A DNA stretch of 64,000 nt from Heteronotia binoei. Its lineage: Eukaryota. The stretch is from assembly GCF_032191835.1 (NCBI RefSeq), contig NC_083232.1, positions 82,274,001 through 82,338,000 of the forward strand, read 5' to 3'. Below the pieces are notes generated by a model. It ran no database searches, had not been told where the DNA came from, and was given only the letters and a program-made list of their open reading frames with translations. Shown piece by piece: positions 584 through 50,559 of the stretch. Made by a program: the position numbers and the translations under genes. Each line of letters opens with the position of its first letter. The first letter of the stretch is position 1.

Positions 584-638
584 CTGAACCTTTGTTTGCT
601 GTGACGAGGAAATTGGAATTATTATCTAAACAAAAGCG
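584..638 (+). CDS. MED1-like exon (55 bp): EPLFAVTRKLELLSKQK
   Basis: cag|CTGAA...AAGCG|gtaagt; phase 1 to 2; aligns to MED1 LPAMTDRLESIARQN. Confidence 0.8.
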
Positions 639-12600: not shown

Positions 12601-15600
12601 GCTCTTAACGGTGGTTATACACTCCAGAGTAATTGGTGGAAGGGGAGGTTTTATCTTTCATTTTGTATAATGAGTTGCCTGTTTCTATAATGAGCAGCAT
12701 GCCCTTAAGTACTTGGAATCGTCTTTGCTAAGTGGTCTGTGTGGTTGGAATGGAAGTGTGCACAGTTGCTATTTTCTGCCATAGTGGCTCCATAGGCCCC
12801 ACTCTGCCTGTCTGGTCCAGGGCTGGCCCTGCCACTAAGCAAACTAGGTGCTTGCTTAGGGTGCCAGCCTTCTGGGGGCACCAAATTGGGTACCCCCATG
12901 TGACTTAGTGACATTATCAGTGTGTGGGGGGGGGGTGCCAGAAGTTAGCCTTGCCTGGGATGCCAGACAGTCTAGGGCCAGCCCTGGTCATGGCAAATAC
13001 TTCCACTTCTTCCACTTCCCAGAGGCAAAAGTTCTGTTTCTGTGTGGCTGGCTTTATTTAGATCAGAGGTCCCCAACCCCCGGGCCATGGACCAATAACG
13101 GGCCATGGCCTGTTAGCAACTAGGCCATGAGCTGTGTAGTTATTTCATTATATATTGCAATGTAATAATAGAAACCATCCCCCTTCCTTCCAGTCCGTGG
13201 AAAAATTGTCTTCCACAAAACCGGTCTCTGGTGCCAAAAAGGTTGGGGACCACTGATTTAGATCCTTCAAAGGATTATGACTTCAGGTTGTGCTACAGAA
13301 GCCTTCACAAGACCAGCTCCCTTTTAACCATTGATCCCTCCTACCTCTGTTTTCCAGCCAACCTGTCTTCTTGCCCCTGACTGCAAAGCTCTGCATGAAA
13401 TTCTCAGCTTGCTTCTTCCTGAAGTTCCATCCACCTTTTCCAGTGTCTTCATCCAACATTGAGAAGCTACAGAAGCTTACAGGCAAACTGATTTAGTTAG
13501 AATTTTGAGTTGTTCGCCTCCTCCTTCCCTCCTACATGACTGCAAAATGTTTAGTTAATACTTCCTTATGAAGTCTTCTTTAACATAAATGTTAGTGTGT
13601 GGGGAGACCTATATTTTGCCTACAAGCGTATCCCAGGAACACTAGTAGTTTCTATCCACATTCAATAGATTCAAGAACAAATTTTACTGACGTGACCTGA
13701 CTAGCCCAGGCAAGTCTGATCTCATCACATCTTGGAAGCCTAAGTAAGGTCAACTGGGGTTAGTAGATGATGAGAGACCACCTTAAAATACCAGCAAATT
13801 AGTGACTTTCAGACACAAACACACATCCAAATACAAAAAATACCTCCCAAAAAAGAGTTAAAACAACAAATTTCACTTACCATGGGGAAACAATCCATAA
13901 GAATCTCTACACATTATTATCTCTGTTTTTGTGTGTTTGTTCCAAGTTGCTCTTACACAGTATTATTTCCTACCAATAATTCCAGTGAAATAGCATTCCA
14001 TTTTTCCCGTCAGATTAAGTTATGCTCTATAGGCAATAAATGTGTTGTTTGTTTCTCTAGTCATGTCCTGAATGGCCCTGACGTATTGATGGCCAGTGAA
14101 AGTAAGTGACGGCCACAAGCTTTAAGACTGAGTGAAATTGATGCATGGAGAAGTCCATTGATGGATACTAGGTTTGTGACTGAAGGGAGCCTCCATCTAC
14201 AGAGCCAGCAAAACTCTGAATAGCAGCGCTAGGAGGCGGCAACAGTAGGGGAGAACCTTGGCTTTTATGCCCTGTTTGTTTGGTTCTCCAGGGCAACTGG
14301 TTGACCACTGCATGAAAGAGGATGCTGGACTCGATAGACTGATGGCCTGATCTAGCAAGCTGTACTTAGTTTCAAAACTTGTCGTAAGAACCTATTTGAA
14401 ACTTCTGTGAACAAACCTGAAATTTTGACTGGATGTCCTAATTTATTTGTCTGCCTTTGGAGAAAGGAGAAGCTTTAGAAAAGGAGCAAAACAGCTAAAA
14501 GTTCACCTTGGCTAAATCTAAGTTTGATCCTGAACATTTTTACTTGAAAGTTGATCCTTGTCAATACTTGTTTCCAAATATGCTTAGCAGTTCAGTTTTC
14601 TGTTGGAAGTAAGGCCCCATGGATGCATTCAAGAAATGGGGTACCTGCAGGGGGTTTTTTGTGCCAGAGCCCACTGGAGCACAGCTCCACCTGGGATAAC
14701 CAGGGTTCCAGCAGAAGAGGACAGCCACATGCTCCTAGGCAGGCAACATTTGCCAACTGGGCTCACAGGCCCAAGCCATGCTGTGGTATGGCTTCCTTAG
14801 GCCCAGCTCACTAGCTGGGTTCGTGGGGCTGAGCCATGCTGTGGCATGGCTTCCCAGAGCTCCTGCTGGGCTTTTTCTACAAAAAAAAAAGCCCTGGGTA
14901 CACACAGTACACTCCTCCACTTGAGTTTGATGGTGGCATGGTGGAAACTACAATCAAGTTGCAGCTGACTTATGGCAATCCCATTCAATTTTCAAGGCAA
15001 AAAGACATTCAGAGATTGTCATTGCCTTCTGCCTTGCAATCCTTGTCTTTCTTGGTGGTCTCCCATCCAAGTGTTACTCAGGGCCAACCCTGCTTAGCTT
15101 CTGAGATCAGATGAGATCAGGCTAGCCTGGGCTATCCAGGTCAGGGTTGAGTAGAGTTTATACATTTCTAAATCCAATGAGCTTGGCCAGGGGTGGAATT
15201 CTAGCAGGAGCTTATTTGCATATTAGGCCACGCACCCCTGATGCTGCCAATCCTCCAAGAGTTTACAAGGCTCTATTTTGTAAGCTCTTGGAGGATTCGC
15301 TACAACAAGGGGGTGTGGCCTAATATGCAAAGGAGTTCCTGCTAGAATTCTACCCCTGGGCTTGGCTCCCTCAAAGGCCAGTTGTGTCAGAGAAGGAGAA
15401 AAATCTTCTTTGTCTTGGATTGACTTATTCTATGTCTCTGGAGTTGGTGTTTCTTTGAGGCAAGGCAATGCCAAAGACAGCCATCCTGATGAGCATGCTA
15501 GGGTTTGACTTCTGGTGAAGGTGTTTCACATCTGATCATCCGCATGAGCTTGCCTTCAGGGTCAACTGGTTCTTTCCTGATGTTCAGGAACTTGAAGCTC

Positions 15601-18600
15601 AGCCCACAGAAATGGAAGGGAGGAGTGAGCAGAAGATGCAGAATCTAAAGAAGAGGCTGAGTGAATAATACCCACATCATTCTCATGCCCACATCTCCTT
15701 CTTTTCATGCATAGTTGAGAGGGTGACAGAGGGGGTCCTCACATGAAAATAGGAAGGGCAGGAGAAGTGGCAGAGGAGAAGATGCAGAATTAATTAAATT
15801 GATATTTGTGGTGTGGTTGATGACAATCTTGACCTTTCAGTTGCATAACCTTGTTGCTCTGTTGGCAGAGACCCAGCAGTCTCCTGGTAATTCTGTCACC
15901 AAGGTGCACTTGATTTTTGCTTTGATCTTATGGCCTAATCATTGTCATAAGAAAAGAATTTTGTTTCAGGAATTGCAATAGATGGCTTGAACCTAGCTCC
16001 TCTTCATGAGTTGATTGTTCAGCACGCCCTTTCTGAAAAACACAAATATAATCCAGCAGTTAACAACTTTTTTGTTGTGGTGAGTACCCCACTAATAAGA
16101 ACCAGGACCTGGATGAAGAGGGATGTAACAGTTTAAATCAGATGTGTTTGGTTTTTCCCTCTCTTTTGGGTTTGTTGCATTTTGGAAAGCCATGTAGATT
16201 TTTGGAAATGTGCATGTTAAATAGACTTCTGCGGTACAATGCCATGACCTCTGACTTAGCCTAACTACATCATCTAAATTTGTGGGATCTACCATGACTC
16301 TAAACACAGCTGCAGTTCTGTACACAGTTTTAACTTTCATGCTACCCCGCCCCAACATAAATTCCATTCAGACTTTAATTAACAACATTGTGCGCTGCTG
16401 AAGACTATTTGACCTTCTTAAATAGGTGAGATGATGTGTTTAGCACAAACACTCACACATACAATTTCTGCAGACTTTTAAACCATTCAAATGCCTTGAA
16501 CTGGGGAGATACTGACTCGCAAAGGCCTTGCACAAACCTGTCTGAAGCTACTGTAATGACTACGTGAATTATAGATGCAGTTTGGATAGTTACGAAAACT
16601 TGCTGATGGGAACAAGTGACATTAGAAATGAAGAGTCAAAGGCTGCTACTGACAGGTTCATGATCATTCTCACTTACTTTGCTTGCATGGCTTTCTCCTC
16701 TGCAACACTTTTGTGTGATCTTACTGTTGTCATTTCTGGAGGTGGGGATTGGGGAATGGACACATTGGTTTTCCCATAAAAGTTGCTTGACTTTGTGGTT
16801 GATGTGCAGCCTGGTTCATCAGATCTAACACCACCACATATAGTATACCACTGTAGCACTTGTTTGCTTGCCTATTTCAATTCCAAAATGTATCGGTTTC
16901 ATATTGCAATAATGAGAGAAGCTTTCTTTGGGGTTTATGCCTTGGGTTTCAGAGTCGTTTGTACATCCTTTTTCTTGCCCAATGGCTTTTTGATCTTGAA
17001 GGGAAGCACCTTCTACTTTCAGCCTGGATTGTTGATGGTTGAACAAAGCAATCTGGAGAATTTATTTTTAACCTTTTATGCAAAGTTCTTACCCTTACAT
17101 CCTTGGAAAAATAATTGTGAATCCAAGAATAAATCTTGCAATATGAGGAATGTGCAGGTCATTGATTTACAACATTTATGTGGGAAAATTAATTGTAAAC
17201 TCATGCCATATATTTGGAGGAGATTGATTAATTGGCTTGATAAAAGTGATTCATGTAATTGGGCCTATATAAGATAGCCACGCTCCACCCCCCCCCTCCA
17301 AAAAAACACCCCATCTTTCAGATGTGAGTTGCATGAGACTATCCAGTCTTTCTGAGAGCACTTTAGTGAGAATCTCAGAAATTGTATTTTCTCCCTTAAT
17401 CTTAAAATAAATAGGATAAAGGATGATTCATATGTCTTTCTGTCTCTGATTTCATTTATATATGCAAGCATTTTTGTATCATTGTGATTCTTCCATTTGT
17501 AGTCAGTTCAAGAGCAGTTAGACTACTTTTTAAATAACTATCTTAAAAGATAACATGATTTTTGACTGAGCTACAAGGTTTTCACTTGACATTTGGAATA
17601 AACAACCTTCTGATTTCTCTTCCATCAGAGGGCTGATAACCTGCAGAGATTGGTTATTGAAGAAAGTAATCACCTTAATATAGCCTGGTGGTTTAATGTG
17701 AATGTGTTGCTTTGGAACAGGCAAAGAGACTCTTGGTTTCCATACATCTGTTTTAAAGGGAATGCTTCCTTAACAAGGGGGTGGGTGGGGGGAGTCAGTA
17801 ATACACAATTACAATAGCACTTTCCTATGCTATGCTAAAAGCTGGGGGTCTGTGTTATGCTAAAAGCTGAGGGTCATTTTATATTTGGTCTGATTAAGCA
17901 GAGAATTGGTGATTGCCTTGAAGTTCTTCCATGATTGAAATATGTACTGCTCTTCAGTGTCTTCCAGATTGCCCAAAGCACTGTTATTACATAAACAATG
18001 GTACAGGAGCATCTTGTTTGACCGGTGCAGTGGTCAGTAAACTTCCATTCACGCATCTACAGTATGTGCCTGATATAATTGAAGTTCTCCGGCATCAAGC
18101 AGCATACAACACACTTGTTAGTAGCTGCATCTCTGGGATTGCTAACTCTGAAGGTATAATTTTTACCCCTCTTTCTGTCATGTCCTGAGAAGATTATATG
18201 GGGGTGGGTGGAATTAAGGATCTGTTTAACTACCAGAAGTGAAACTTAAGGGTAATAATTATGGCCAACATGTAAAAGCTGGAAATGATTTCACTTCTGG
18301 CTAATTAAGAACATAAGGGAAGCCATATACCAACATGTACCACCACCACTGACCACAACTACTGACTCCTCCCCAGCACTATCAGCCTATCTAGACCTTT
18401 GCACCAAGCAGGCAAGAAGCAGGGTTGCTTTTTATACCCCACCTTCCACTACCCAAAGGAGTCTCAAAATGGCTTACAATCTCCTTCCCTTTGTCTCCTC
18501 ACAACAGACACCCTGTGAGGCAGGAGGGGCTGAGAGAGTTGTGACTGACCCAAGGTCACTCAGCTGGCTTTATGTGGAGGAGTGGGGAATCAAACCCAGA

Positions 18601-21600
18601 TTCGTGTCCACAGCTCTTAACCACTACCTGTTCACCAACTGAAGGGGTTTCTTCTGAGAGACACCTTCCACTTATCAGCACGGTGCCTGGTTTCCCTTTG
18701 ACCCTCATGCTTTGTGACAGCGGTGAGGCTGCCGTTCTCAGAGTGGGACACCTTACAAGTCCCTGAGAGTCTTATCCATTTGCCTAACTGTCTCTGTTTC
18801 TCCAGATCAGCCACCTTGGCCTCATGGGTGTGAACTTGTTCCCTGAGAACCAGGAGGTCCTTGCAACGAGCACACACCCATGATTTGTCCGCTAGGCAGA
18901 TAGTCATACATATGCAATACTCGTTATACTCAGTGCAATACACTGGATAGCCCCCGACCTCCTGCTGGCATTCTACCTTCATAACTGCCTTTTTATTATT
19001 TTTGTCTTCCCCTCCCCGCTTTTTTTTTTTAAGTTCTATTTATGTAGATTTGTTTGTGGAAAGTGTGCTTACCCTTTTAGGAATGTGGAGAGACTAGTGC
19101 CCTGCCTTCTTCACCCTGCTGCTCAACTTGCACCCAATTAGTAATGCAGGACTAAGGCTACGTTATCACATATACAAGGGCAGGGTTCTGTGGCTTGCAC
19201 ATTGCACTGTATTGACAAAAAGTTTCGATACAGAGAGAAAACTTAAACAAAACATTATTGAACACAGTTTTGAATCCAACAAAGTTTAGTTCTGGGTATA
19301 AGCTTTCACATGCATGCATACTTCTTCAGGTACATAGGAACAGACTTGCAAAACCTTTACATACAGGTGAGCAGGTTGAGTTACCAGGAAAGGGTAGCTA
19401 GCTAGAGTCGAGATGCATAAGTAACTGGGTGATAAGTATAGCTAAGACAGCTAACATTATTGAGTCCTTCTGTTTTAACTTGCAAGATCATCTAGAGAGC
19501 TTTTGGTAAGTTAACAAAACTTTGCTTGGGTTTTATTTTGAGGGACACCTCTTTTGGTGCGCCTCTCTCTTTTATTTCCTTGTGGAATCTAATCTCTAAT
19601 AAAATAACTTCCTTCCAGTTTCTTCAGAGCTACTTCATTTTGAAGTTTGTCCGGTGAAAGCCAATAGCTTTTCGGTTACATTTCAGCAGCCTGGGGAGGA
19701 AAATCTAGCCTGTGGTATGTGTAAAAAGCAGAAAGGTGGTGGAGGTGACAGCAACTTCTGTACTAAAAACTGTTAATGATAACTGTGGGTTAGGGTGTTC
19801 TTGCTTGGACCCTTAGCAGATTACCAGAACTGTTCCTCCAAAGGCTGTTAAGACTTCTTTTTACCTAGCTTTCCCATTTGTTTTCTTCCCTTCCCTGGTT
19901 GGAACACACAACCCCACTACTTGTTGACTATAGTGTAATGTGATTGCTATCTCTATGATGCCACTTGTTTAATTTCCACATCCATTGGGTTATGTAATTT
20001 CCAAAGTGTAAATTTCCAAGTTTAGTAAAAAAAATCCTAATTGCGTATTCTTCTCTCCCTCCCTCCTGTTCAGTGTTGATTGATGTTCCCAGCTCAAAGG
20101 AAGTCATATGTACTCTTTATACACTTTCTAAAGACAAGGTCTTAAATGGGATTGAGGAATTTTTCAACAGAGTTTTGAAGCGGTAAGTGATGTCACATCC
20201 AGGGCTTTTTTTTGAGTAGGAACACACAGGAATGCAGTTCTGGCTGGCTTGGTGTCATGGGGTGTGGCCTAATAGGCAAATTAGTTCCTTCTGGGCTTTT
20301 TTTTTTTTTTTTTACAAAGAAAGCCCATGTCACATCTAATGGCCAAAGTCTAGCCCCTACAATGCAAATGGACGAGTTCAGAGAATGGCACCAGCCACTG
20401 TTACTCTTTTGGGGCTTTGCGACCTCAGGGTGGAACCCCTCAGGTTTGCCCAAACATCTTAAATATAAAAAATTAAATTAACCCTTGCAAAGACATACTG
20501 ACATCAGTGCTGATATTACAGAAACTCAGCCACTGAACAAAGTCTGAGTCCAGGGGCACCTTTAAGACCAACAAACTTTAATGCCAGGTATAAGCTTTTG
20601 TGTGTATGTATCTGAAGAAGTGAGCATGCACGTGAAAGCTTATGCCCAGAATTAAACTTTGTTGGTCTTAAAGGTACCACTGGACTCAAACTTTATTCTA
20701 CTGCTTCAGACAAATACAGCTACCCACATGAATCCAAGCCACTGAAGGCTGAGTGGTTTTTTGGCTTGAGGAGAGGGTGATAGAGGCAACCAGCAACAGA
20801 TAGCGGTGGGGGGCAGGGCTGGAGCTGGCAGTGGAAGGAAGGTGAAAATTTCCCTTTTTATATGCAAGTTGTCACAGGTACCCTTCTTGTTTCTTATTAA
20901 TACTAGAACACGGATTTCCTATTAAAGAGAATCTTTGTAATACTGAGAATTAAGGACCAAACTTTGTGTTGTCCTAAACGATGTAATACTGTTACTACCC
21001 TTCCATTAGGGAAGACTTTATTTAAGGAGTATGCATTTAGCTAGTCTGAGATTCATTGCAAAGATGTATCTCTCTTTACCGAATAAAATTATATTGCATG
21101 TTGACAAGTGTACTGAGTGAAATCAAAATAGTTGTTGCAGTGCAGGTTCAATCACTGGGGCAGGGCTTTTTTTTTTTTTTGAGCAGGAATGCACAAGAAC
21201 ATCATTCCGGCTGGTTTGGCATCAGTGGGTGTGGCCTAATACCCAAATGAATTCCTGCTGGGCTTTTTCTACAAAAAAAGCCCTGCACTGGGGCAATGCT
21301 TTAAGGCATCCAGTGCCAAAGTTGGCTACAGAATTCCAGGGCCCTTGGGTCTCGGGAGCCCCACTGCAGCTCCCTTCTTCCCCTCAAGCCTTACAGTCAT
21401 GGCTCCCATTTACCCACTTGCTCCAAATGCAGCTACATTAGAGGAAATGGAATATGATTTTCCTCACCATCTTTTTAGCACCATCACAACATGTGGACCT
21501 AAGTTCCAGTGAAGCTGCAGAGGCTTCAGGGGCAGCAGCTCAATGGTAGAGCATCTGCTTGAGATGCAGAAGGTTCCAGGTTCAATCCCCAGCATCTCCA

Positions 21601-24600
21601 GTTAAACTGCTCGAGATGCAGAAGGTTCCAGGTTCAATCTCCAGCATCGCCAGTTAAAAGGATCAGGTAGAAGGTGATGTAAAAGACCTCAGGCTGAGCC
21701 CCTGGAGAGCTGCTGCCAGTCTGAGAAGACAGTACTGACCTTGAGGGACCAAGGGTCTGTTTCAATATCAGGTAGCTTCATATGTTCAACTGTGATGGAC
21801 TCCTGGAAGTAGTGATTATGTGGAATGATGCTCTGTATTCTTGGTGCTTGGCGGGGGGCAGCAGTGGAAGGGCTTCTAGTGCCCTGGTCCCACTGATGGA
21901 CCTCCTGATGGCACCTGGTTTTTTTTTGCCATTGTGTGACACAGAGTGTTGGACTGGATGGGCCACTGGCCTGATCCAATATGGCTTCTCTTATGTTCTT
22001 AATTACCTTGCACTTTGCTTCCACTGGGAACTGGAAGATCAACACAGCATCACCAGTCAGGGTGAGCACATTGCTAGGCTGAATCTTGGCGGGTGCCTAA
22101 TCATCTTGCCTAAAACCTGGTGATCTCTCATTTTCATGGGCATGTGAAAGGAAAGGTTACTAGATGAGCAGCTCAGGACACTTGTCCCGTGCTTAGGGTA
22201 TATCGGGACTATCTGCTTGAACTATCGTCAGTCTGGAAATAAGGGGACAGAATTTCTGGGCTTTAATGCCTCTGTAAGCTTCTCAACTAGGACACACAGA
22301 ATGGTGGTGGAAAGTGTCCTCATGTCACAGCTGACTTATGAGCACCCTGTAGGGCTTTCAGGGCAAGAGACATTCAGTAGCAGCTTGCCGTTGTTTGCCT
22401 CTGTATGGTGATCACAGACTTCCTTGGGGGTCTTCTATCCAAATATTAACCAGGGCTGAACCTGATTAGCTTCTGAGATCTAACGAGATGTAATGTAAAT
22501 GTAATGTAAAATTTTATTTATATCCCGCCCTCCCCCGCCGAAGCAGGCTCAGGGCGGCTAACAGCATTTCAAGTAAACAATACAGTATTAAAAACATTAA
22601 ATTCACATTAAAATTCACATTAAAATAAATCAATAATTAAAACATTCCTAAATCAACACTGGCGGTAACCGTTATTAATCTGGCGGTAAACATTAATTCA
22701 GTTATTGGTGAACGCCTGTTTGAAGAGGGCAGTCTTGCAGGCCCTGCGGAACTGGTCTACGTTCCGCAGGGCCCGCACCTCCTCTGGGAGTTTGTTCCAG
22801 AGTTGTGGGGCCGCAACGGAAAAGGCCCGAGTGCGGGTGCTTTGAAGTTTGACTTCTTTTGGCCCAGGGATATTCAGTCTGCTTTTCCCCACTGACCTCA
22901 GTGCTCTCTGGGGCTCATATGGGGAGAGACGGTCCCTCAGGTAGGTCGGTCCTTGGCCATATAGGGCTTTAAAGGTTATGACCAGCACTTTGTACTGGAT
23001 CCGGTATACGATTGGCAGCCAGTGCAGTCCGCGCAGCCCTGGCCGTATATGCTCCCATCTTGGGAGACCAAGTAACAGTCTGGCCGCCGCGTTCTGCACT
23101 AGCTGCAGCTCCCGGGTCCGGTACAGAGGCAGCCCCATGTAGAGAGTGTTACAGTAGTCCAGTCTTGAGGTGACCGTCGCGTGGATCACCATTGCTAGGT
23201 CCTGATGCTCTAGGAAAGGGGCCAACTGCCTCACCCGCCTCAGGTGGAAGAATGCTGATTTGGCAGTGGCTGTTATCTGGGCCTCCATTGATAATGAAGG
23301 CTCCAGTAAGACGCCCAGGCTCTTTACCCACTGCGCCGTCTTCAGCGGCGCCCCGTCAAAGGCCGGGAGAGATATTTCCTTCCCCAGAATGCCACGACCC
23401 ACATGGAGAACCTCTGTCTTCGCTGGATTTAACTTCAGCCCACTCAGTCTAAGCCACGTTGCAACAGCCTGCAAAGCCCGGTCCAGGTTCCCCGGGGCGG
23501 AGGCGGGCCGTCCGTCCATTAGTAGATAGAGCTGGGTGTCATCTGCGTATTGATGGCAACCCAGCCCAAATCTCCGGGCAATCTGGGCGAGGGGGCGCAT
23601 ATAGATGTTGAATAACATCGGGGAGAGAACTGCTCCCTGGGGCACCCCACAGTCTAGTGTGTGCCTCTGGGATCGCTCACCCCCAATCGCCACCCTCTGT
23701 CCCCGACCCATGAGGAAGGAGGAAAGCCATTGTAAGGCCAGCCCCTCAACCCCTATGTCGGCGAGGTGGTGAATCAGCAACCGATGGTCGACTGTATCAA
23801 ATGCAGCCGACAAATCTAATAACATCAGTATTGCCGCACCGCCTCGATCCAGTTGCCGCTGGAGGTCATCCACCAAGGCGACCAGGACCGTCTCCGTCCC
23901 GTGGCCCGGTCGGAAGCCAGACTGGCACGGGTCTAAGACAGAAGCGTCATCTAAAAATCTCTGTAGCTGCAACGCCACTGCCCTCTCGATAATTTTACCT
24001 AAAAATGGTAAATTGGACACCGGTCGGTAGTTTGCCAATTCGGCCGGGTCTGCTGTAGGTTTTTTCAAGAGGGGGCGGACCAAAGCCTCTTTCAGAGGCG
24101 TTGGAAAATGCCCCTCTAGGAGGGATCTATTTATGATGTCCCGTAGAGGACATCTAAGCTCCCTCTGGCAGGATTTAATCAGCCAAGAGGGGAAAGGGTC
24201 CAAATCACATGATGTTGGGCGAGCAGCAGAGAGAATTCCATCAACTTCCTCCAGGCTGAGTGGGTTGAAGTGGTCCAGTACTAAATCTGAAGACCGGCGC
24301 GGAGCCTCAGTTTCACTTACTGTGTCTAATGTGATAGGCAGGTCTTGGCGGAGCGAAGAGATTTTATCTGCAAAATATTTCGCAAATGCCTCACAGCCTA
24401 TTTCTAATTCCCTAATATTTGGTTTGCCTTGTGGCAATGTTATAAGATCTCCAATTACTCTAAACAATTGTGCTGGGCACGATTTTGCAGATGCAATCTT
24501 GGCTGCGAAGTATTCTTTCTTTGCAGCCTTGACTGCCATCTCATAAGACCTCATAAGTGTTCTATAGGATGTTCTCGTCGCTTCGTCCCGAGTATGCCTC

Positions 24601-27600
24601 CACGGTCTCTCTAGTCGTCTGAGCCCTTGCTTCAGCTGGCGTAACTCCAAGGTATACCATGGTGCCAGCCTCTTGCGAGGGCGCAGAGGGCGCCGAGGTG
24701 CAATTTCATCGATAGCCCTGGATAGCTGGCTCTGCCAGACTTCCACCAGGTCATCGAGGGAATTGCCAGTGGGCCAGGAATCCCTCAGGGCTGTTTGGAA
24801 CCGTTCCGGGTCCATCAAGCCCCGGGGGCAAGCCAAAATAGGCTCTCCGCCCATACAGGGTTGGGGCAACGTCTCCATACGGGCCTTAAGGGCTAGGTGA
24901 TCCGACCATGGAACCGCTTCAGCTGCGATATCGTTCACCAAAATCCTGGATGCAAAGATCAGGTCTAATGTGTGCCCGGCCTGATGCGTGGGAGTTGTGA
25001 CAAATTGAGTGAGCCCCAGTGTCACCATGGAAGACACTAGGTCCATCGCCTGAGTGGAGGCCGTGTCATCGGCATGGACATTGAAGTCACCCAGGACCAT
25101 AAGCCCCGGGAACTCCAATGCCCAGCCTGCCACTGCCTCCAATAGTGATGGTAAGGCGCTGGCTGGTGCGCTGGGCGAACGGTACACTAGCCAGATCGCC
25201 AACCCCTCTCCAACATCCCACGTCAGGCCGGCACATTCAATGCCATCGATCCTTGGAGCCAGGAGAGCCCGAAAGGTGTAATCCTCCCGTATGAACAACG
25301 CTACCCCTCCCCCCCGCCCATTGTTCCGCGACTGGTGAAAGACCGAGTAGCCTGGGGGGGTCATCTGGGAGAGAGCTACTGTCTCTCCGTCCCGCACCCA
25401 GGTCTCGGTCATGCAAGCCAGGTCCACATCCTGTTGGAGTAGGAACTCGAGGGTCGAGGTCTTGTTGTTGATGGACCTGGCGTTGCATAACACCAGTGAC
25501 GGAGACAGGCATTTCCTCTTGGTCCCACTACCTACCACCGTTGGGATGGGAAGTAGACTGGAAGGTGGCCGAGCACCATTTTGTCTCTGTCTCCTTCTCT
25601 TGTGTATCTGTCTATTCCGTCATATCTTCCCCTCCCCAGGAGCACTGGAATCCCTTGGGCAGGCATCCGCACTTGTCTGGATAGCTCACAGTATAACCTC
25701 TCGCGATTGATCTCCTAATCTATCCCTACCTGTCGTTTAACTTATCCCTCCCCTACCAACTCCTCCTATTCTTAGCTGCTAACTCACTAATTACATCTTA
25801 ATTTAATTAATTTAATAACCCAACCCAATCTCCCCTTCTGATCAATTAATAAGAAATTATAAATTCAATCGATTCCAGCAGTTAATAAATAAATAAATAC
25901 TCCCTCCCACCATTCCTAGTTACTGTGCTAAAATTTGTAAATATAGATATATATAAATTAATATATAAATATATTATACATAATCAATCATTAATTAATT
26001 GACTAAAATCAAATAAATTAATTAATAACAGTTTTAGTGAAATTCATTAGCGGTTAGCAGTCAGTTGGTTCCTAGTTTATAAGTCCAGATAATCAGTAGA
26101 GGGTGGTAGTATATATTGTCAATGGGGTGCAGATGCTAAAGTCATAGGTTAGTCTTGGGTGCTGATAAAGTGCAAGTGCCAGTGCAGTTGGTGTGTAAAT
26201 ACATTCCTCTTTCCCAGTCCCTTGTGGCTTGACACACTCCTGGGCTCCCCTGAACCCCGCACAGGGCTTCTCTGTCGGGGAGTATCCAGGCCGTTGGGTC
26301 AGCCCCTCTAGATAGCGTCCGTGGATGGAAAAGGTGGTGGGGAGATCAAGCTAGCCTGGGCCATCCAGGCCAGGGCGTTGGGAATAGTTATGCTAATAGA
26401 CAGCACAACCCAGCTCTAAGTGGGACAGAATTTTACGGCTCTTATTTATATCCCACCTTGAATTTCTTTCAATAAAAACATGGGCTGTAGGGGAATAATG
26501 GAAGAGACTTTGGGGACCTTGTTGCCTTTCCCCCTCCCTTTCCTGAAAAATAAGGTGGCCACTGATTGATAGTTGAGTTAGAAACTGGGCACAGGCTGAT
26601 AAATGGAAAAGACTTGTTCATTCTTCTAAGCTCCCTCTCCACCCCCATTTATGGAAAGGCTGGCCATTTAATGGAGTCTCAGTGGGAGGGGCTAAATAGC
26701 AGTTGCCTAATGGGAAAGGTCCACTGCAGAATAGACAGCATAATTTCAGCTCATTTGAGGATGGTGGCAAACAGTGAATTGTTCTTTAAGGAAGCCAGCG
26801 GGCTATCTGTGGGACAGACAAGGATATACTGGTGAATTCCTTGAATATTCATAGGATTGTTTTCACTCTTCCTTCTAAGGTGCATGTCTGTCCCTATTTT
26901 TATGAGAACAGTTTTCAAAAAGGCTTTCAAGCTACAGTCCAATGAAGCTGTGCAAGGCATGGAAGAAACATCTGAACAAAGCCCACAGGAGGCCTCCAAG
27001 ATGGCAGACATGGACGGCAGTGGAGCCATCTTGCAAAACACTGGACTTGATTGGGAATCTTGGAGCCCCGACATCCTAGAAAGTCTCCCTGACCCAGGTT
27101 TCCTAGCTTCACTGAGTGAGGCCATGGATATCACTTTTGCGGAGCCACTGGATGACAGGACAGAAGCAAACTCTTCCTCATCAAGTCTCCCACCGCTGGA
27201 GCCACTGGATGACAGGTCAGAAGCAAACTCTTCCTCATCAAGTCTCCCGCCGCTGGAGCCACTGGATGACAGGACAGAAGCAAACTCTTCCTCATCAAGT
27301 CTCCCGCCGCTGGAGCCACTGGATGACAGGACAGAAGCAAACTCTTCCTCATCAAGTCTCCCGCCGTTGGAGCCAATGGATGACAGGACAGAAGCAAACT
27401 CTTCCTCATCAAGTCTCCCGCCGCTGGAGCCACTGGATGACAGGACAGAAGCAAACTCTTCCGCATCAAGTCTCCCACCGTTGGAGTCACTGGATGACAG
27501 GTCAGAAGCAAACTCTTCCGCATCAAGTCTCCCACCGTTGGAGCCACTGGATGACAGGACAGAAGCAAACTCTTCCGCATCAAGTCTCCCGCCGTTGGAG

Positions 27601-28374
27601 CCACTGGATGACAGGACAGAAGCAAACTCTTCCGCATCAAGTCTCCCGCCGCTGGAGCCACTGGATGACAGGTCAGAAGCAAACTCTTCCGCATCAAGTC
27701 TCCCGCCGCTGGAGCCACTGGATGACAGGTCAGAAGGAAACTCTTCCGCATCAAGTCTCCCGCCGCTGGAGCCACTGGATGACAGGTCAGAAGGAAACTC
27801 TTCCGCATCAAGTCTCCCGCCGCTGGAGCCACTGGATGACAGGTCAGAAGCAAACTCTTCCGCATCAAGTCTCCCGCCGCTGGAGCCACTGGATGACAGG
27901 TCAGAAGCAAACTCTTCCGCATCAAGTCTCCCGCCGCTGGAGCCACTGGATGACAGGTCAGAAGCAAACTCTTCCGCATCAAGTCTCCCGCCCTTGGAGC
28001 CACTGGATGACAGGTCAGAAGCAAACTCTTCCGCATCAAGTCTCCCGCCCTTGGAGCCACTGGATGACAGGTCAGAAGCAAACTCTTCCGCATCAAGTCT
28101 CCCGCCGTTGGAGCCACTGGATGACAGGTCAGAAGCAAACTCTTCCGCATCAAGTCTCCCGCCGTTGGAGCCACTGGATGACAGGTCAGAAGCAAACTCT
28201 TCCGCATCAAGTCTCCCGCCGTTGGAGCCACTGGATGACAGGTCAGAAGCAAACTCTTCCGCATCAAGTCTCCCGCCGTTGGAGCCACTGGATGACAGGT
28301 CAGAAGCAAACTCTTCCTCATCAAGTCTCCCACCGCTGGAGCCACTGGATGACAGGACAGAAGCAAACATTTAA
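584..28374 (+). CDS. MED1-like protein (divergent Mediator subunit 1 paralog), 5'-partial; 14 coding exons, 2741 nt, ~913 aa in window
   Basis: 14 exons with AG acceptors and GT donors (one GC) join in one open frame with matching phases. Translation aligns colinearly with recalled MED1 N-terminal motifs (YITTEMFYIEIQL~YITSDMFYVEVQL; KVFLALQSLE~KMYLALQSLE; KILHGKIGYL~KILHGSVGYL; ACFFLKF; LRHQAAYNTLVSSC~IRHQVAYNTLIGSC; LLHFEVCP~LLQFEVCP; RCMSVPIFMR~RCMSIPVTMR). Confidence 0.9.
2736..2868 (+). CDS. MED1-like exon (133 bp): LNCHTSPNGTAFYITTEMFYIEIQLKADGEPIEIKLAHPGESPQ
   Basis: Polypyrimidine tract + ttag| acceptor, CAG|gtaatg donor; about half of residues identical to recalled MED1 segment. Confidence 0.92.
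4396..4424 (+). CDS. MED1-like exon (29 bp): NCEDLLQVLR
   Basis: ctag|AACTG...CTAAG|gtatgt; aligns to MED1 SCPELVQQLR; phase fits neighbours. Confidence 0.82.
4813..4884 (+). CDS. MED1-like exon (72 bp): KKDYDTFGKILEELLSIYQIPGS
   Basis: taaag| acceptor, GCAG|gttagt donor; aligns to EKNFDEFSKHLKGLVNLYNLPGD. Confidence 0.85.
4961..5035 (+). CDS. MED1-like exon (75 bp): KTKAKVFLALQSLERDITSLSLLPR
   Basis: gctag| acceptor after a 76-bp intron, CCAG|gtgagt donor; LALQSLE motif. Confidence 0.9.
7914..7984 (+). CDS. MED1-like exon (71 bp): ALDTERTTKILHGKIGYLRPRTA
   Basis: acag| acceptor, GCAG|gtacgt donor; KILHG.(V/I)GYL.PR motif. Confidence 0.9.
8382..8788. mobile_element. hAT-like MITE with CAGGGGTGGCCAAA TIRs and internal short tandem repeats
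   Basis: caggggtggccaaa ... tttggccacccctg; TSD not preserved. Confidence 0.75.
9336..9401 (+). CDS. MED1-like exon (66 bp): TPMSLEFYLSPMQILEEQLTP
   Basis: tgtag| acceptor, CCAG|gtaatt donor; aligns to HLMNLKYYVSPSDLL. Confidence 0.85.
9640..10150 (-). mobile_element. Older L2 3' fragment
   Basis: Similar to 3' end of the intact L2 (gcagggccctg...aggcttttgtttga); (ATTC)n tail. Confidence 0.65.
10447..10916. mobile_element. hAT MITE with TAGGGTTGCCA TIRs (shorter relatives ~743-927, 1568-1710, 3385-3558, 5408-5545, 49285-49480)
   Basis: TIR pair; TSD gatgtaac/gatgtaat (7 of 8). Confidence 0.85.
11760..11868 (+). CDS. MED1-like exon (109 bp): LQVPGMKVFVTIGGSDVAYKLPIYPLIGNSLTETD
   Basis: catcag| acceptor, ATAG|gtaaga donor; aligns to GMNASVTIEGTSAVYKLPIAPLI. 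Confidence 0.88.
13064..13255. mobile_element. hAT MITE (CAGGGGTCCCCAAC-type TIR)
   Basis: TIRs cagaggtccccaac / gttggggaccactg; perfect 8-bp TSD ATTTAGAT; related copy ~62861-63105. Confidence 0.9.
13358..13482 (+). CDS. MED1-like exon (125 bp): QPVFLPLTAKLCMKFSACFFLKFHPPFPVSSSNIEKLQKLT; GC donor
   Basis: ttccag| acceptor; ACFFLKF.P.PVS motif; the only frame-preserving donor is ACAG|gcaaac. Confidence 0.85.
14930..15147 (-). mobile_element. 5S rRNA-derived SINE (others ~4125-4290, 8003-8201, 13690-13790, 30700-30815, 44330-44525; two copies split by LINEs)
   Basis: Reverse complement reads gatctcatctgatctcagaagctaagcagggttgg...acttggatgggagacc (5S internal promoter region) plus an aaggcaatg.caa tail like Sauria SINE. 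Confidence 0.85.
15188..15358. mobile_element. Fully palindromic hAT MITE (others ~3172-3290, 10152-10330, 14640-14900, 20200-20330, 21160-21290, 43191-43359, 52777-52950, 63630-63700)
   Basis: Arms gcaggagct..tttgcatattaggccac / gtggcctaatatgcaaa..cctgc; TSD agcttggc/ggcttggc. Confidence 0.85.
15970..16079 (+). CDS. MED1-like exon (110 bp): IAIDGLNLAPLHELIVQHALSEKHKYNPAVNNFFVV
   Basis: tttcag| acceptor, GTG|gtgagt donor; aligns to APLYELITQFELS. Confidence 0.85.
17958..18153 (+). CDS. MED1-like exon (196 bp): CLPDCPKHCYYINNG...LRHQAAYNTLVSSCISGIANSE
   Basis: cttcag| acceptor, GAAG|gtataa donor; HCY and RHQ.AYNTL..SC motifs. Confidence 0.92.
18632..19000 (-). mobile_element. CR1 ORF1 (zinc finger/leucine zipper) fragment
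   Basis: YPVYC.E...WVCARCKDLLVLREQVHTHEAKVADLEK, typical of reptile CR1 ORF1 N-terminus. Confidence 0.7.
19619..19714 (+). CDS. MED1-like exon (96 bp): SSELLHFEVCPVKANSFSVTFQQPGEENLAC
   Basis: ttccag| acceptor (in-frame alternative at 19628), TGTG|gtatgt donor; LL.FEVCP...FSV.FQ.P motif. Confidence 0.9.
20074..20182 (+). CDS. MED1-like exon (109 bp): LIDVPSSKEVICTLYTLSKDKVLNGIEEFFNRVLKR
   Basis: gttcag| acceptor, AGCG|gtaagt donor; aligns to VMDVQDSTHVSCKLY...FIAKVVQR. Confidence 0.88.
20545..20710. mobile_element. Palindromic Penelope-terminus derivative with degenerate hammerhead core at 20612-20641 (others ~19270-19335, 37170-37230, 53000-53215)
   Basis: gagtccag..gcacctttaagaccaacaaa arm in both orientations; ctgaagaagtgagcatgcacgtgaaagctt. 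Confidence 0.7.
21529..21788 (+). mobile_element. Squam3-like tRNA SINE with internal ~52-bp duplication (others ~11300-11500 -, 43005-43410 +, 45020-45245 -, 55600-55700 +)
   Basis: A-box tagctcaatggtagagc-like head, B-box ggttcaatcc present twice, tail ggcagcttcatatgttca. Confidence 0.8.
21795..21992 (+). mobile_element. CR1-type 3' tail fragment (others ~8990-9180 -, 14140-14360 +, 36270-36365 +, 48525-48725 -, 51950-52150 -)
   Basis: ggactggatgggccactggcctgatccaatatggcttctcttatgttctta terminus repeated across copies. Confidence 0.7.
22490..26341 (-). mobile_element. L2-clade LINE, near full length, in the last intron of the MED1-like gene (antisense)
   Basis: 946-aa ORF2; (TACAT)n tail at ~22490-22510; 3' end gggagggcgggatataaat; ~670-bp 5' region; splits a 5S-derived SINE with short GAGAT duplication. 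Confidence 0.93.
22698..25538 (-). CDS. L2 ORF2: APE endonuclease + reverse transcriptase
   Basis: EN motifs CNARS, TETW, GDFN, TLDL, SDH; RT motifs YRPVSNL, QSGFR, DLSAAFD, GVPQG, YADD; L2-type C-terminus LHWLP...AFSVAAPQLWN.LP. Confidence 0.95.
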   Translation of the reverse strand: MVGSGTKRKCLSPSLVLCNARSINNKTSTLEFLLQQDVDLACMTETWVRDGETVALSQMTPPGYSVFHQSRNNGRGGGVALFIREDYTFRALLAPRIDGIECAGLTWDVGEGLAIWLVYRSPSAPASALPSLLEAVAGWALEFPGLMVLGDFNVHADDTASTQAMDLVSSMVTLGLTQFVTTPTHQAGHTLDLIFASRILVNDIAAEAVPWSDHLALKARMETLPQPCMGGEPILACPRGLMDPERFQTALRDSWPTGNSLDDLVEVWQSQLSRAIDEIAPRRPLRPRKRLAPWYTLELRQLKQGLRRLERPWRHTRDEATRTSYRTLMRSYEMAVKAAKKEYFAAKIASAKSCPAQLFRVIGDLITLPQGKPNIRELEIGCEAFAKYFADKISSLRQDLPITLDTVSETEAPRRSSDLVLDHFNPLSLEEVDGILSAARPTSCDLDPFPSWLIKSCQRELRCPLRDIINRSLLEGHFPTPLKEALVRPLLKKPTADPAELANYRPVSNLPFLGKIIERAVALQLQRFLDDASVLDPCQSGFRPGHGTETVLVALVDDLQRQLDRGGAAILMLLDLSAAFDTVDHRLLIHHLADIGVEGLALQWLSSFLMGRGQRVAIGGERSQRHTLDCGVPQGAVLSPMLFNIYMRPLAQIARRFGLGCHQYADDTQLYLLMDGRPASAPGNLDRALQAVATWLRLSGLKLNPAKTEVLHVGRGILGKEISLPAFDGAPLKTAQWVKSLGVLLEPSLSMEAQITATAKSAFFHLRRVRQLAPFLEHQDLAMVIHATVTSRLDYCNTLYMGLPLYRTRELQLVQNAAARLLLGLPRWEHIRPGLRGLHWLPIVYRIQYKVLVITFKALYGQGPTYLRDRLSPYEPQRALRSVGKSRLNIPGPKEVKLQSTRTRAFSVAAPQLWNKLPEEVRALRNVDQFRRACKTALFKQAFTNN
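26880..28374 (+). CDS. MED1-like terminal exon (1495 bp): CMSVPIFMRTVFKKAFKLQ..., acidic linker, 19-aa repeat array, stop
   Basis: ctaag|G TGC ATG acceptor completes Arg codon CG|G; start matches MED1 RCMSIPVTMRAIRRKA; open to TAA 28372-28374; AATAAA at 28595-28600. Confidence 0.88.
27142..28368 (+). repeat. Coding minisatellite, 57-bp unit x ~21.5 (EPLDDR[S/T]EANSS[A/S]SSLPPL)
   Basis: 1227 bp = 21 x 57 + 30; units differ by only a few substitutions. Confidence 0.98.
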
Positions 28375-28594
28375 TCAAGTAGCCTGCCGGTGTCCTCTTG
28401 TGAAATGGAAGAGCTTCTGCTTTTTACTAGTGAGGATTCTTAAGGGACAAGGTGGACGAAGGCACCACGGATGAGTCACAGACTTCACCCAACAGCCCAG
28501 AAAGAAAGGAAATCTAAAGGAGATGGCAGTGGGAAGTCCTAGTGTCTTTAAGCCTAATTTTTATCTTCTAATACTTGATGATGATTAAAATTAC

Positions 28595-28600
28595 AATAAA
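28595..28600 (+). terminator. Candidate polyadenylation signal of MED1-like gene
   Basis: AATAAA ~220 nt after the stop, followed by a GT/T-rich tract; ATTAAA at 28584-28589. Confidence 0.45.
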
Positions 28601-30565: not shown

Positions 30566-31902
30566 ATGTAGATGACATACAAAGCTGCTTTATGAACTAT
30601 CACATTAGCTAACTCTGTAACATTGCTCTATCTGTCTGGGGGGTGTTTCTGAATAAATGCAACTGAGAAGTTTGGAACTATGACTTTGAGAAGTTTGAGA
30701 CACTTCTCAAGGTGAGAGACTCTGGAATTCCTTAGTCTCCCATCCAAATACTAACCAGGGCCAGCCCTGCTTAGCTTCCAAGACTGGGCTGGCCTGGGCC
30801 ATCCAGGTCAGAGTGACAGGATAGGACCAAATACAGCAGGAAATACTCAGAATACAAACACAGCAAGAAAGAGGCCTCCAGTTCCATCTTAGCTGAGATG
30901 GATCCAGGGATTTGTTAGCAGCACAACTTACAGACGTAGATTTTTCCTTGCTTTCCTCCTCCATCAGTCCTTTCTGGCCCTGCCGATTTTAGCCTCTTCT
31001 CACCTGAGCCCCTCAACCTATGTGGGACCTGCAACCTTAGGCATCAAGCGTTCTGGGACTTGGCAAGACTGTTATGAGGGAGGACAACAAAAACAAAGCC
31101 ACACTCCTTGCAGCATTGGATCCACCTTCTTTTATGTACAAAAGGGAGAATGCCTCACATGGCTGCTATCCAGTTTTTCTAGCAAATCCACTAGGCAGCT
31201 GAGGGCATGTACCTTTGCTGCATTTACAAGTTTTCCAGCTGACTAAATACTGCAGGCTAAAAACTGTACATCAGAGAATGAGCAACAATACATTCTGACA
31301 ATGGGCTTTGTCAGGGACCACAGGTGCCGGGTTGCCTTGGTGTATCTATGCCAGGATCATCTGAGTGATCTTGTCTTCCCCATCTTATGCCTCCCCCTCC
31401 CTAACATCTGCCATTTGGCTGGCTAGAAATTTATGAATACATGGACACACTTCCCATCTCCCGTCTTGTGCAGATACCACAGGCCCTTATTCTGGAAAAT
31501 TCTAGACACTCTGTCTAACACTATACGCCTTGAAAAATCCTACTTTGTTCAATAAAAGTTTAGTTCCAGATGAAGGTGCAGAGCAATGCAGTCCTTGCCT
31601 TCTTACTTAGTGGTCTGGGTTAGCTCTAACATGATGGAAATTATGTTTAGCATGGAGGGTATGCATGCTGTTCTCTATGCACAAGACCTGAAAAAGGCAC
31701 TATGACTGTGCAAGACAAAGTTTTCTATTTTATAAAAGCTCAACGTTTGATTATAGCAACCATATTTGTTTTCATAAATCCCACACAATTTGGAATGTAT
31801 CCATCTTAGGGCTCAGGAATTCAGAAGTAGCTTCTGTAAAAGATTGCACTTTATTCTCCATAAATGATTCCTATTTTCTGCAATAAATTAACTTTGCAAT
31901 TC

Positions 31903-32323
31903 CTAGATGTGTTCAGGTGGGCTTGGAGGCAAGCCTAATTGTTCCATTAAACGGACAGTTCTTTCTTTCAGCCAAGAAAGGCCTGGCTTCCCAGAAGTTG
32001 TGTGTCCTTTCGATCTTCTACAACATTCACTTTGGAAAGAAGCAGTCCCACTATTTGTGCAATAGTGTCCACAAAACGGGGTACCATTTTCACCAGTTTG
32101 TTGATCTTGAGCTCTATTAGGCTGCTCCTCTGGAGAATGTGGATGACCAAGGTCCATGTCCTCAACTGTATCCAGTAAGTCCGTAAGACAGGGTTGTGAG
32201 TGCGTACAGTTAAGATCCTTAATTGTATCCTCTTCATATTTGTTTATTTCATTCAGCAAATCAGTAACTCTCTTCAGCATTGCAGAATCACGTTGGTTGT
32301 TGTGACACCAAGACAAAAGAGCA
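31903..32323 (-). CDS. YAE1: YAE1 coding exon 3: ALLSWCHNNQ...DLLDTVEDMDL...EQLGLPPSPPEHI*
   Basis: Poly-T + ag acceptor; SALLSWCH, DLLD..EDMDL and ECCR motifs as in recalled human YAE1; total CDS 660 nt = 219 aa. Confidence 0.93.
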
Positions 32324-33072
32324 CTAAAAAAAAAAAAGCAGACATTTGAGACCAAGTGAAAAGTTAGATACCTACTGCATCATGGACTCTCCTGGAAATG
32401 GGTATCCTTCTAGCAGATACCTGATGTCTCAGTGCAGGTGCTTGCCCTGCACGGCTTTTCTTCTGTGAATTTGACAATCCCAGGAAGCCTTTGCAGGGGT
32501 TAGAAGGGCCCCCCTCCTCTTTTCACCAGCAGAAAAGCTGACTGCATCCAGTGATTTTAAACAGTTCAGGAGGGAAGTGGGCTTGCATTTATGGTGGATC
32601 CCACTTTTCCCAGCTCCAGAAAAGATACAGGCTTTTCCAGGGTGACCGCCTTAGGAGATGTAACCCAGAGGGGGAGAAGCAGACAGGAGTTTTAAACAGG
32701 GCTGCAGCCTGAAACATCTACTTTAAGTTCAATGAGGCATAGGAATGGTTGGGGGAGAGGCAGCTATAATCAGCACAGAGACAGAAATACTCTTGATTTA
32801 AATAACCGCGAAATACTGATTTTTCAGAGCCTACATTCAACGGAACATACATCCTGCCTTCAAGGTACTTTAAATGTATGGGAAAGCATTTTCAAAAGTT
32901 ATTGCTAACTGGACCCCAAGTATATATCTGAAATAGATGTTGGGAAAGACAAGCTTGTGAGTCTCCAGAGGCATCGGATCACTGCTGGAGTAGCTTGTGG
33001 AGGCTTGTCCTAAACCTAAAAACCCTTTTTGATGAGATCTGTCAATTTTAAAAAAAATACTTTAGAACTTAC

Positions 33073-46181: not shown

Positions 46182-47345
46182 CTCTCTCTCTCGGCTTGAC
46201 TTCGCGAACGAAGATTTAAGAAGGGTGCAGTAGTCCACGTCTGCTGCAGGCTCGCTGGTGGCTGACAAGACCAATGCGGGACAGGCAGATCCGGCCACAG
46301 TGGCTGCAGGGAAAAGTTTGATTTGGGGTTGGTGCTGTAGCAGTGCGATTCTTCCTCAATCTCCTTTTTCCTCAAGACGAGCTATGCGTGCGTTCTCAAA
46401 GGAAGAGACAGCCTGGTGGATGGTGTGCCTCCATGCTTTGCGATCTGAGGCTAGGTCAGACCACTGGTGATGGTTGATGTGACAGGTGCCAAGGGATTTC
46501 TTCAAGGAGTCCTTGTACCTCTTTGGTGCCCCTCTATTTCGATGGCCGGTGGAAAGTTCGCCATACAGAGCAATCTTGGGAAGGCGGTGGTTTTCCATCC
46601 TAGAAATATGCCCTGCCCAGCGCAGCTGCGTCTTCAACAGCAGTGCCTCGATGCTTGTAACCTCCGCCCTCTTGAGGACTTCAGTGTTGGTCACAAAGTC
46701 ACTCCAGTGGATGTTGAGGATGGTGCGAAGGCAGCGCTGATGAAAGCGCTCAAGGAGTCGCAGGTGATGACGGTATAAAACCCACGATTCGGAGCCATAG
46801 ATGAGGGTTGTCATCACAACCGCTTTGTAAACATTGATCTTTGTGCTTTTTTTCAGATGCTTGTTGCTCCACACTCTTTTGTGCAGTCGGCCAAATGCAC
46901 GGTTTGCCTTTGCCAGCCTGTTGTCAATCTCCTTGTCGATCTTGGCATCTGAGGAGATGATGCACCCCAGGTAGCTGAACTGCTGGACCGTCTTCAGAAC
47001 TGATTCACCCACAGTGATGCAGGGAGGGTGATAATCTTCCTGGGGTGCAGGCTGGTGGAGAACTTCTGTCTTCCTCAGACTAACTTCTAGGCCGAATAGC
47101 TTGGCAGCCTCTGCAAAGCAGGACGTCATATGCTGCAGAGCTGATACCGAGTGGGAGACGAGTGCAGCATCATCAGCAAACAGTAGCTCGCGGATAAGTT
47201 TTTCCATTGTCTTGGAGTGAGCCTTTAGTCGCCTCAGGTTGAACAGGCTGCCATCGGTGCGATAGCGGATGTAGACACCATCGTCATCATCTAGATCTAC
47301 TGCGGCTCTTTGAAGCATCATGCTAAAGAAGATCGTAAAGAGAGT
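46182..47345 (-). mobile_element. 5'-truncated RTE-clade LINE (partial RT + C-terminal zinc finger)
   Basis: ORF 46356-47321 with YRTDGSLFNLRRL, LLFADD and LRWAGH motifs; frameshift before CSHCG...SH..C; (GA)n tail; TSD TGGTTAGT at 46174-46181 and 47346-47353. Confidence 0.92.
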
Positions 47346-50510: not shown

Positions 50511-50559
50511 CCAGTGTTTATTCTGAATTCTAAAATTCCAACCTACTCAATGAAATTTT

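Follow-up and report, generated by a model that had tools for sequence, protein, structure and literature searches.

A probable lineage-specific coding minisatellite in the terminal exon of a small-form MED1-like gene of the gecko Heteronotia binoei

Coding minisatellites, or protein-coding variable number tandem repeats (VNTRs), in disordered protein regions are a known class of sequence, with mucin and involucrin-type arrays as examples. Here we describe a 64,000-nucleotide stretch of the genome of the gecko Heteronotia binoei (NCBI RefSeq assembly GCF_032191835.1, contig NC_083232.1, positions 82,274,001 to 82,338,000 of the forward strand; hereafter the window), in which an array of 57-bp tandem units lies in the last exon of a gene related to MED1, a subunit of Mediator. 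Like known coding minisatellites, the array is built from head-to-tail units whose length is a multiple of 3 nt and which are ~97% alike, in frame with conserved flanking coding sequence, with clustered variants and degenerate edges; it is also species-specific, and a length difference of one unit is on record (RefSeq isoforms X1 and X2). It departs from the usual members of the class in lying within a paralog of the core transcription machinery, in having apparently grown from a squamate-conserved segment and in ending in its own stop codon.

The second point of comparison is MED1 itself, for which we relied on a PDB alignment (7emf_A) and the literature. The intrinsically disordered region (IDR) of canonical MED1, like the tail of the H. 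binoei protein, directly follows the Med1 domain, is encoded by the last exon, is Ser-rich and has no predicted structure. By contrast, the canonical IDR scaffolds condensates and has blocks of charge together with two nuclear-receptor boxes of the LxxLL type, while the H. binoei tail has neither basic blocks nor LxxLL boxes. Frogs and fish have both large and small Med1 forms (Bourbon 2008, PMC2475620). The small-form paralogs share with the H. binoei gene the Med1 domain, the exon layout and synteny with YAE1, and in both the last exon starts at an RCMS[VI]P helix and encodes an acidic, Ser-rich tail in place of an IDR of ~1000 aa. The H. binoei tail differs from the others in its length and charge (498 aa with a net charge of -74, versus 73-205 aa and -1 to -37 in the small forms of other species), in that 410 of its residues stem from one amplified 19-aa unit, and in that the ancestral C-terminus has been cut off. 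We favor, as the probable explanation, that the terminal exon of a small-form MED1-like paralog next to YAE1 carries a real coding minisatellite specific to this lineage, and that its origin was most likely near-neutral.

Structure and reading frame of the array

Tandem Repeats Finder located the array at 27141-28368 (positions throughout are those of the window unless stated otherwise), with a period of 57 bp, 21.5 copies, 97% matches, no indels and a score of 2218. Read in register from 27142, the array consists of 21 full units and a partial unit of 11 codons, which is followed directly by a TAA stop codon. The consensus unit translates as EPLDDRSEANSSASSLPPL and contains four acidic residues, one Arg, five Ser and three Pro, with no aromatic residue. 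Over its entire length the array harbors 26% Ser, 21% Asp+Glu, 15% Pro, 15% Leu and 5% Arg, no Lys and no Phe, Trp or Tyr; its net charge is -66, and the net charge per residue (-0.16) is constant in every sub-window taken along the array. Trypsin is predicted to release a single 19-residue peptide from each unit, either SEANSSASSLPPLEPLDDR or the Thr/Ser variants TEANSS[AS]SSLPPLEPLDDR.

Variation within the 57-bp unit is restricted to eight positions, and the array shows an ordered succession of variants. The SSSSS form is found in units 1-5 and 21, while Thr is present in units 1, 3-6, 8 and 9 and in the final partial unit. The two Gly units, 11 and 12, are adjacent, and runs of identical neighbors span units 13-14, 15-16 and 17-20. 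Such an arrangement is what local duplication leaves behind, the older variants surviving at the array edges. The region contains no Ns and lies on a chromosome-scale contig.

A first-pass annotation of this DNA had described an array of ~21.5 copies of a 57-bp, acidic, Ser/Pro-containing unit with strong negative charge, and both the Tandem Repeats Finder result and the calculated net charge confirm that description. It had also reported that the variants cluster, with SSSSS and Thr forms at both ends and a Gly pair in mid-array, as is evident from the unit-by-unit reading, and had ascribed the array to slippage or unequal crossover, a mechanism that the degenerate edge units and identical interior neighbors fit. 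Its reading of the array as the tail of a MED1-type protein likewise holds, the array lying in frame within the terminal coding exon of a MED1 paralog.

Four of the six possible reading frames are open across the array and, therefore, openness by itself is no evidence of coding. The terminal exon begins at a splice acceptor (...ttctaag/G at 26880/26881), and its first residues form a MED1-homologous RCMSVP segment, RCMSVPIFMRTVFKK, which is the counterpart of human MED1 RCMSIPVTMRAIRRK. We assigned the array frame because it continues that of this segment, with which the exon opens, and that of the orthologous codons which other lizards have in single copy. The unique part of the exon that precedes the array shares 74-78% DNA identity with the same exon of the geckos Paroedura picta and Gekko kuhli and 56% protein identity with P. 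picta MED1-like.

The protein sequence of the array is already present in RefSeq, where XP_060104147.1 (MED1-like isoform X1, 991 aa) includes all 21.5 units as coding sequence. The X1 locus in GCA_032191835.1 corresponds to positions 1-31374 of the window and is identical to it over 31,374 bases, and the exons of the window match both X1 and isoform X2 (972 aa) at 100%. The RefSeq annotation and the maintenance of the open reading frame (ORF) suggest that the array may be translated.

Origin of the array and fate of the ancestral C-terminus

A single copy of the segment that corresponds to the unit, followed by a longer tail, is present in each of P. picta, G. kuhli, Sphaerodactylus townsendi and the cordylid Hemicordylus capensis. 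No tandem repeat is found in the terminal exon of P. picta, while G. kuhli has one copy of the segment, EPSDDRTEANTSLSSLPVP, and then an end of 38 residues that is intact, SCELEELLLFTSEDISG... For all four species the unit-to-tail match exceeded every one of the 300 composition-preserving shuffles (p < 0.004). The same test was marginal in turtles and birds (p 0.03-0.23) and in frogs the match was no better than composition. Because the match beats all shuffles in the four lizards, is marginal in turtles and birds and is absent in frogs, the unit is, judged from these alignments, a squamate-conserved segment that is normally located ~40 residues from the C-terminus. The broader proposal that it is a tetrapod-wide conserved motif is ruled out beyond squamates by the same test.

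Alignment of the DNA of the three geckos reveals what became of the original end of the protein. The 143 bases that follow the array's stop codon are 70-80% identical to those of the other geckos and retain a recognizable C-terminal remnant, the counterpart of which is intact in G. kuhli and P. picta. In H. binoei the remnant carries two lesions: it has lost 1 nt near 28438 and acquired another in-frame TAA at 28441-28443; past the deletion the shifted frame is open to the ancestral stop at 28515-28517.

These comparisons reveal a simple course of events. An 18/19-codon stretch of an ancestral short acidic tail was amplified head to tail to ~21.5 copies in the Heteronotia lineage, in a pattern that fits slippage or unequal exchange, with the reading frame kept because the unit is 57 = 3 x 19 nt. 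A stop codon arose in the degenerate last unit such that the protein now ends at the array, leaving the old last ~47 codons to decay in the 3′ untranslated region (UTR).

The MED1-like tail of G. kuhli contains an array of its own, which adjoins the single-copy counterpart of the unit. Like the H. binoei array it lies in the same exon and in the same acidic, Ser-rich tail, and is in frame, recent and lineage-specific. It differs from the H. binoei array in being formed from a different neighboring segment and in having only five copies, and the ancestral C-terminus behind it is intact. The tails of the frog Ascaphus truei show ~9 iterated EExSSSIVEE-type motifs and other frog tails are similar, although their likeness to the gecko unit is not above that expected from composition. 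The MED1-like tail is, to judge from these sequences, a recurrent site of in-frame repeat growth. Given that the tail tolerates repeats in several lineages and that the rate on the H. binoei branch is near-neutral (see below), the expansion was most likely a near-neutral mutational event in a fast-evolving, repeat-tolerant tail, one that would multiply the valency of a squamate-conserved acidic motif without conferring a specific new function.

The MED1-like gene, its family and its neighborhood

The gene model is based on database proteins and exon-by-exon codon maps. A tblastn search with P. picta MED1-like recovered 13 collinear coding blocks and the terminal exon, while exons 1-3 lie upstream of the window (Table 1). 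AG and GT dinucleotides are located at, or no more than 2 nt from, most of the block ends, the map being approximate at split codons. A protein search with the non-repeat part returned a P. picta protein of 655 aa, annotated as "mediator of RNA polymerase II transcription subunit 1-like", and the best matches of the gene come from the MED1-like proteins of geckos and other squamates, of turtles and birds, and of frogs. Pfam identified a Med1 domain (PF10744) at residues 69-418 (E 7.8e-39), and phmmer aligned residues 21-543 with residues 11-550 of human MED1 (7emf_A; E 8e-113). Clear similarity to human MED1 stops near residue 512 of the query, which is residue ~518 of the 1581 in MED1, and there is no homology beyond this point.

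The close relatives of the gene comprise ~120 MED1-like proteins from birds, turtles, squamates and frogs; no mammalian protein was among the protein-search matches to MED1-like. The tails that follow the RCMS helix measure 73-144 aa in sauropsids, with net charges of -1 to -22, and ~200 aa in frogs, with net charges of -23 to -37 (the family maximum being 205 aa). The first-pass annotation had proposed that the array replaces the MED1 disordered region. The long IDR, however, is missing from the whole MED1-like family and therefore the minisatellite did not replace it; the acidic tail was short to begin with, and the array replaced no more than its final ~47 codons, as read from the gecko alignment. 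The contrast that the same annotation drew with the canonical MED1 C-terminus stands, as the array has 0 Lys and 5% Arg and neither basic blocks nor LxxLL motifs were found in the tail. Because these basic-block, Lys/Arg and LxxLL features are missing from it, the tail is not a MED1-type IDR. A phmmer search with the tail against 1.84 billion representative proteins returned only its own gene and the G. kuhli orthologue, the other matches being unrelated repeat proteins, and no description of the repeat was found in the literature searched.

MED1-like and YAE1 are arranged tail-to-tail in G. kuhli as well as in the window. A Pfam search with the last exon of YAE1 alone (31882-32331) detected no domain.

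Table 1. Features of the MED1-like locus in the window, with the terminal-exon array of G. kuhli
Feature	Position	Strand	Remarks
MED1-like exons 4-16 (Med1 domain)	583-20182	+	tblastn with P. picta and H. binoei proteins; codon map of RefSeq X1
MED1-like exon blocks, first set (approximate)	583-636, 2734-2868, 4396-4422, 4811-4882, 4959-5036, 7915-7983, 9335-9400	+	
MED1-like exon blocks, second set (approximate)	11759-11866, 13356-13484, 15972-16079, 17958-18152, 19618-19713, 20073-20182	+	
Unique 5′ part of terminal exon 17	26881-27141	+	MED1-homologous RCMSVPIFMRTVFKK segment, then acidic linker; sets the array frame
Coding minisatellite (probable)	27142-28371	+	21 x 57 bp + 33-bp partial unit (11 codons) = 410 codons; EPLDDR[ST]EANSS[AS]SSLPPL
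Derived stop TAA, in degenerate last unit	28372-28374	+	Aligns with Ser codon TCC (G. kuhli), TCT (P. picta); three-gecko DNA alignment
Remnant of ancestral C-terminal ~47 codons, now 3′ UTR	28375-28517	+	Recognizable SSCEMEELLLFTSEDS...; three-gecko alignment
AATAAA polyadenylation signal	28595-28600	+	Conserved in three geckos
YAE1 last exon	31882-32331	-	80% protein identity to G. kuhli neighbor; convergent with MED1-like
Gekko kuhli terminal-exon array	11745-11896 of the retrieved G. kuhli locus		30 bp x 5.1, ASLSDSTVEN, 99% matches, in frame, adjoins single-copy unit counterpart

The last intron of MED1-like contains, on the reverse strand (22701-25619), a stop-free 973-aa ORF2 of a long interspersed nuclear element (LINE) with endonuclease and reverse transcriptase domains, which looks young and is possibly still coding. 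Elsewhere in the window, a 330-aa open fragment on the reverse strand (46359-47348) has a weak reverse-transcriptase match and is probably a LINE remnant, and a G + C-rich region at 50500-51520 (~53% in 2-kb windows) with long stretches open in several frames on both strands looks like the CpG island or promoter of a neighboring gene.

Constraint, expression and competing explanations

All 17 exons of MED1-like are open in H. binoei, and the 581 non-repeat codons contain no stop and no frameshift. Neutral evolution along the entire branch would predict ~9 stops in these codons (P ~1e-4), which argues that the gene was kept for most of the H. binoei branch, albeit as a fast-evolving one. Indeed, rapid evolution characterizes the MED1-like family as a whole (pairwise omega, the ratio of non-synonymous to synonymous rates or dN/dS, 0.5-0.7), and the pairwise dN/dS of the Med1 domain between H. 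binoei and P. picta is 0.57.

Several observations weigh against our preferred reading of the array as a real coding minisatellite in a maintained gene. Among the unit variants, 3 changes are synonymous and 5 non-synonymous in the coding frame, while for a second open frame the figures are 4 and 4; the comparison thus does not single out the coding frame. The copy number of 21.5 is the figure of the assembly alone. No exon reads were found at 26300-27200, a region that covers intron, acceptor, the unique part of the exon and the first unit, in the only three raw RNA-seq runs that carry the species label (~10 million 100-nt reads each, ~30 million in total), although the presence of the organism in these runs is not shown and the result is hence no real test; two older metatranscriptome runs contained no words from the 3′ flank of the array. 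An AlphaFold2 model built from 36 sequences shows no secondary structure at residues 515-991, yet its mean predicted local distance difference test (pLDDT) score is 41.5 and the domain is modeled poorly as well, which makes it weak support for a disordered tail. On the H. binoei branch omega is 0.88 versus 0.48 on the P. picta branch (Sphaerodactylus outgroup, 311 codons, dS being equal on both branches), and 16 of the 156 conserved columns deviate in H. binoei compared to 7 of 156 in P. picta. These rates leave room for a recent relaxation or incipient loss of MED1-like in H. binoei.

Of the explanations that compete with a coding minisatellite of most likely near-neutral origin, the one that fares best, although we regard it as unlikely, is that the repeat was selected as a functional multivalent tail that acts through condensate partitioning, as a PEST (Pro-, Glu-, Ser- and Thr-rich) degron or in the manner of an acidic activation domain, with unit-number alleles tuning its strength. 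No part of the squamate tail is better conserved than the amplified segment, and both the independent repeats in the same exon of G. kuhli and the iterated motifs of the frogs could reflect selection; a tail under weak constraint and prone to mutation, however, would be just as likely to gain repeats time and again, and neither the near-neutral H. binoei branch nor the lack of exon reads in the three RNA-seq runs (with the proviso on the presence of the organism given above) favors a selected function. That RefSeq X2 is one unit shorter than X1 would fit with unit-number alleles. With a re-implemented PESTfind formula, by which a potential motif spans at least 12 residues between K, R or H, contains P, D/E and S/T and scores above +5, every inter-Arg segment of the array scored as a potential PEST motif (+8.3 to +11.2), in agreement with the earlier suggestion of a PEST-like tail. 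But the PEST score is a weak predictor, and since the orthologous single-copy tails, which lack the repeats, also exceed the threshold (+10 to +16), the property is ancestral and not new. Acidic activation domains interleave acidic residues with bulky hydrophobic or aromatic ones; the array combines Asp+Glu with Leu (LPPLEPLDD) but has no Phe, Trp or Tyr, and the unit contains no CK2 site ([ST]xx[DE]), no Ser-Pro site and no aromatic residue.

The case for condensate partitioning draws on published data, which revealed that the clients of MED1 condensates are rich in negative charge, with a preference for IDRs that are negatively charged, and that the strongest interactions are those of negatively charged windows (bioRxiv 10.64898/2025.12.23.696191). 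In our preferred reading, the predicted product combines a Med1 anchoring domain (~510 aa) with a 410-residue, uniformly polyanionic, Ser/Pro/Leu-rich tail without predicted secondary structure. If made, it would stand in the place of MED1 within Mediator but lack both the nuclear-receptor boxes and a basic scaffold-type IDR. Because the published clients are rich in negative charge, we would expect the tail to act as a strongly negative condensate client or counter-ion, not as a scaffold.

Slightly less probable still is that MED1-like is losing its function in H. binoei, in which case the expansion and premature stop would be tolerated lesions and the tail idle, or the gene barely expressed. 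Beyond the branch omega and deviating columns already noted, H. binoei carries 20 unique changes at sites that are invariant in five outgroups, compared to 9 in P. picta, and 38-45 unique residue changes overall with the five outgroups, compared to 25-34. The changes fall in part at nearly invariant positions, as with G224E, S361C and P394L. The loss of the ancestral C-terminus and the empty RNA-seq runs (subject to the same proviso) point the same way. Against this stand the open exons and the deficit of stops described above, the mildness of the relative-rate excess (p 0.04-0.6) in a family that evolves fast throughout, and the fact that two RefSeq isoforms are modeled through the array.

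The two isoforms also bear on the number of units. X2 is X1 minus exactly one 19-residue unit, which is missing at the Gly pair; there are few other sites in the array at which the absence of a unit could be recognized from a short read. The Ser-type units each carry ...GACAG/GTCAGA, with the result that GT and AG recur 57 nt apart and a gapped alignment across one unit therefore looks like a canonical intron. The in-unit GT site is, however, weak, having C at +3 and lacking a pyrimidine tract, and an intron of 57 nt would be very short. Real splicing within the array hence appears unlikely, and, for the same reasons, a second allele with 20.5 units would be the likelier source of X2. The array had been called length-variable in the first-pass annotation; the one-unit difference between X1 and X2 fits length variation, and could stem from a second allele, an alignment gap or splicing. 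That the copy number is an assembly artefact, or that the array is removed from the mature mRNA, is highly improbable, for although X2 is short of exactly one 57-nt unit, the GT and AG spacing mimics canonical introns and the copy number comes from the assembly, the unit variants are ordered and non-random on a chromosome-scale contig without Ns, the in-unit site is poor when judged by the splice-site consensus, and the array would exist even if the count were off by one unit.

A further idea, which we consider a long shot, is that expression of the array turns MED1-like into a polyanionic "anti-IDR" subunit of Mediator, which would occupy the MED1 slot and bind or neutralize the basic MED1-type IDRs of neighboring complexes, the unit number varying among H. 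binoei lineages, including hybrid parthenogens, and so tuning transcriptional output.

The array, by its sequence, looks like an ordinary coding repeat, real and species-specific. It adds a further case to the known class of coding minisatellites, within an annotated MED1-like family, and does not represent a MED1-type IDR. Its value lies in providing a clean, datable case of a disordered tail remade by tandem amplification, whereby a conserved 19-residue segment grew into a polyanion of 410 residues while the former C-terminus was lost, and in the fact that a sister lineage, G. kuhli, did something similar in the same exon. Short of expression, the locus is an evolutionary curiosity in a gene that is possibly under relaxed constraint. 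With the same anchoring domain and the opposite charge, it offers a natural contrast to the basic, scaffold-type IDR of MED1 and, if the protein is made, could help to test charge-based rules of condensate partitioning.

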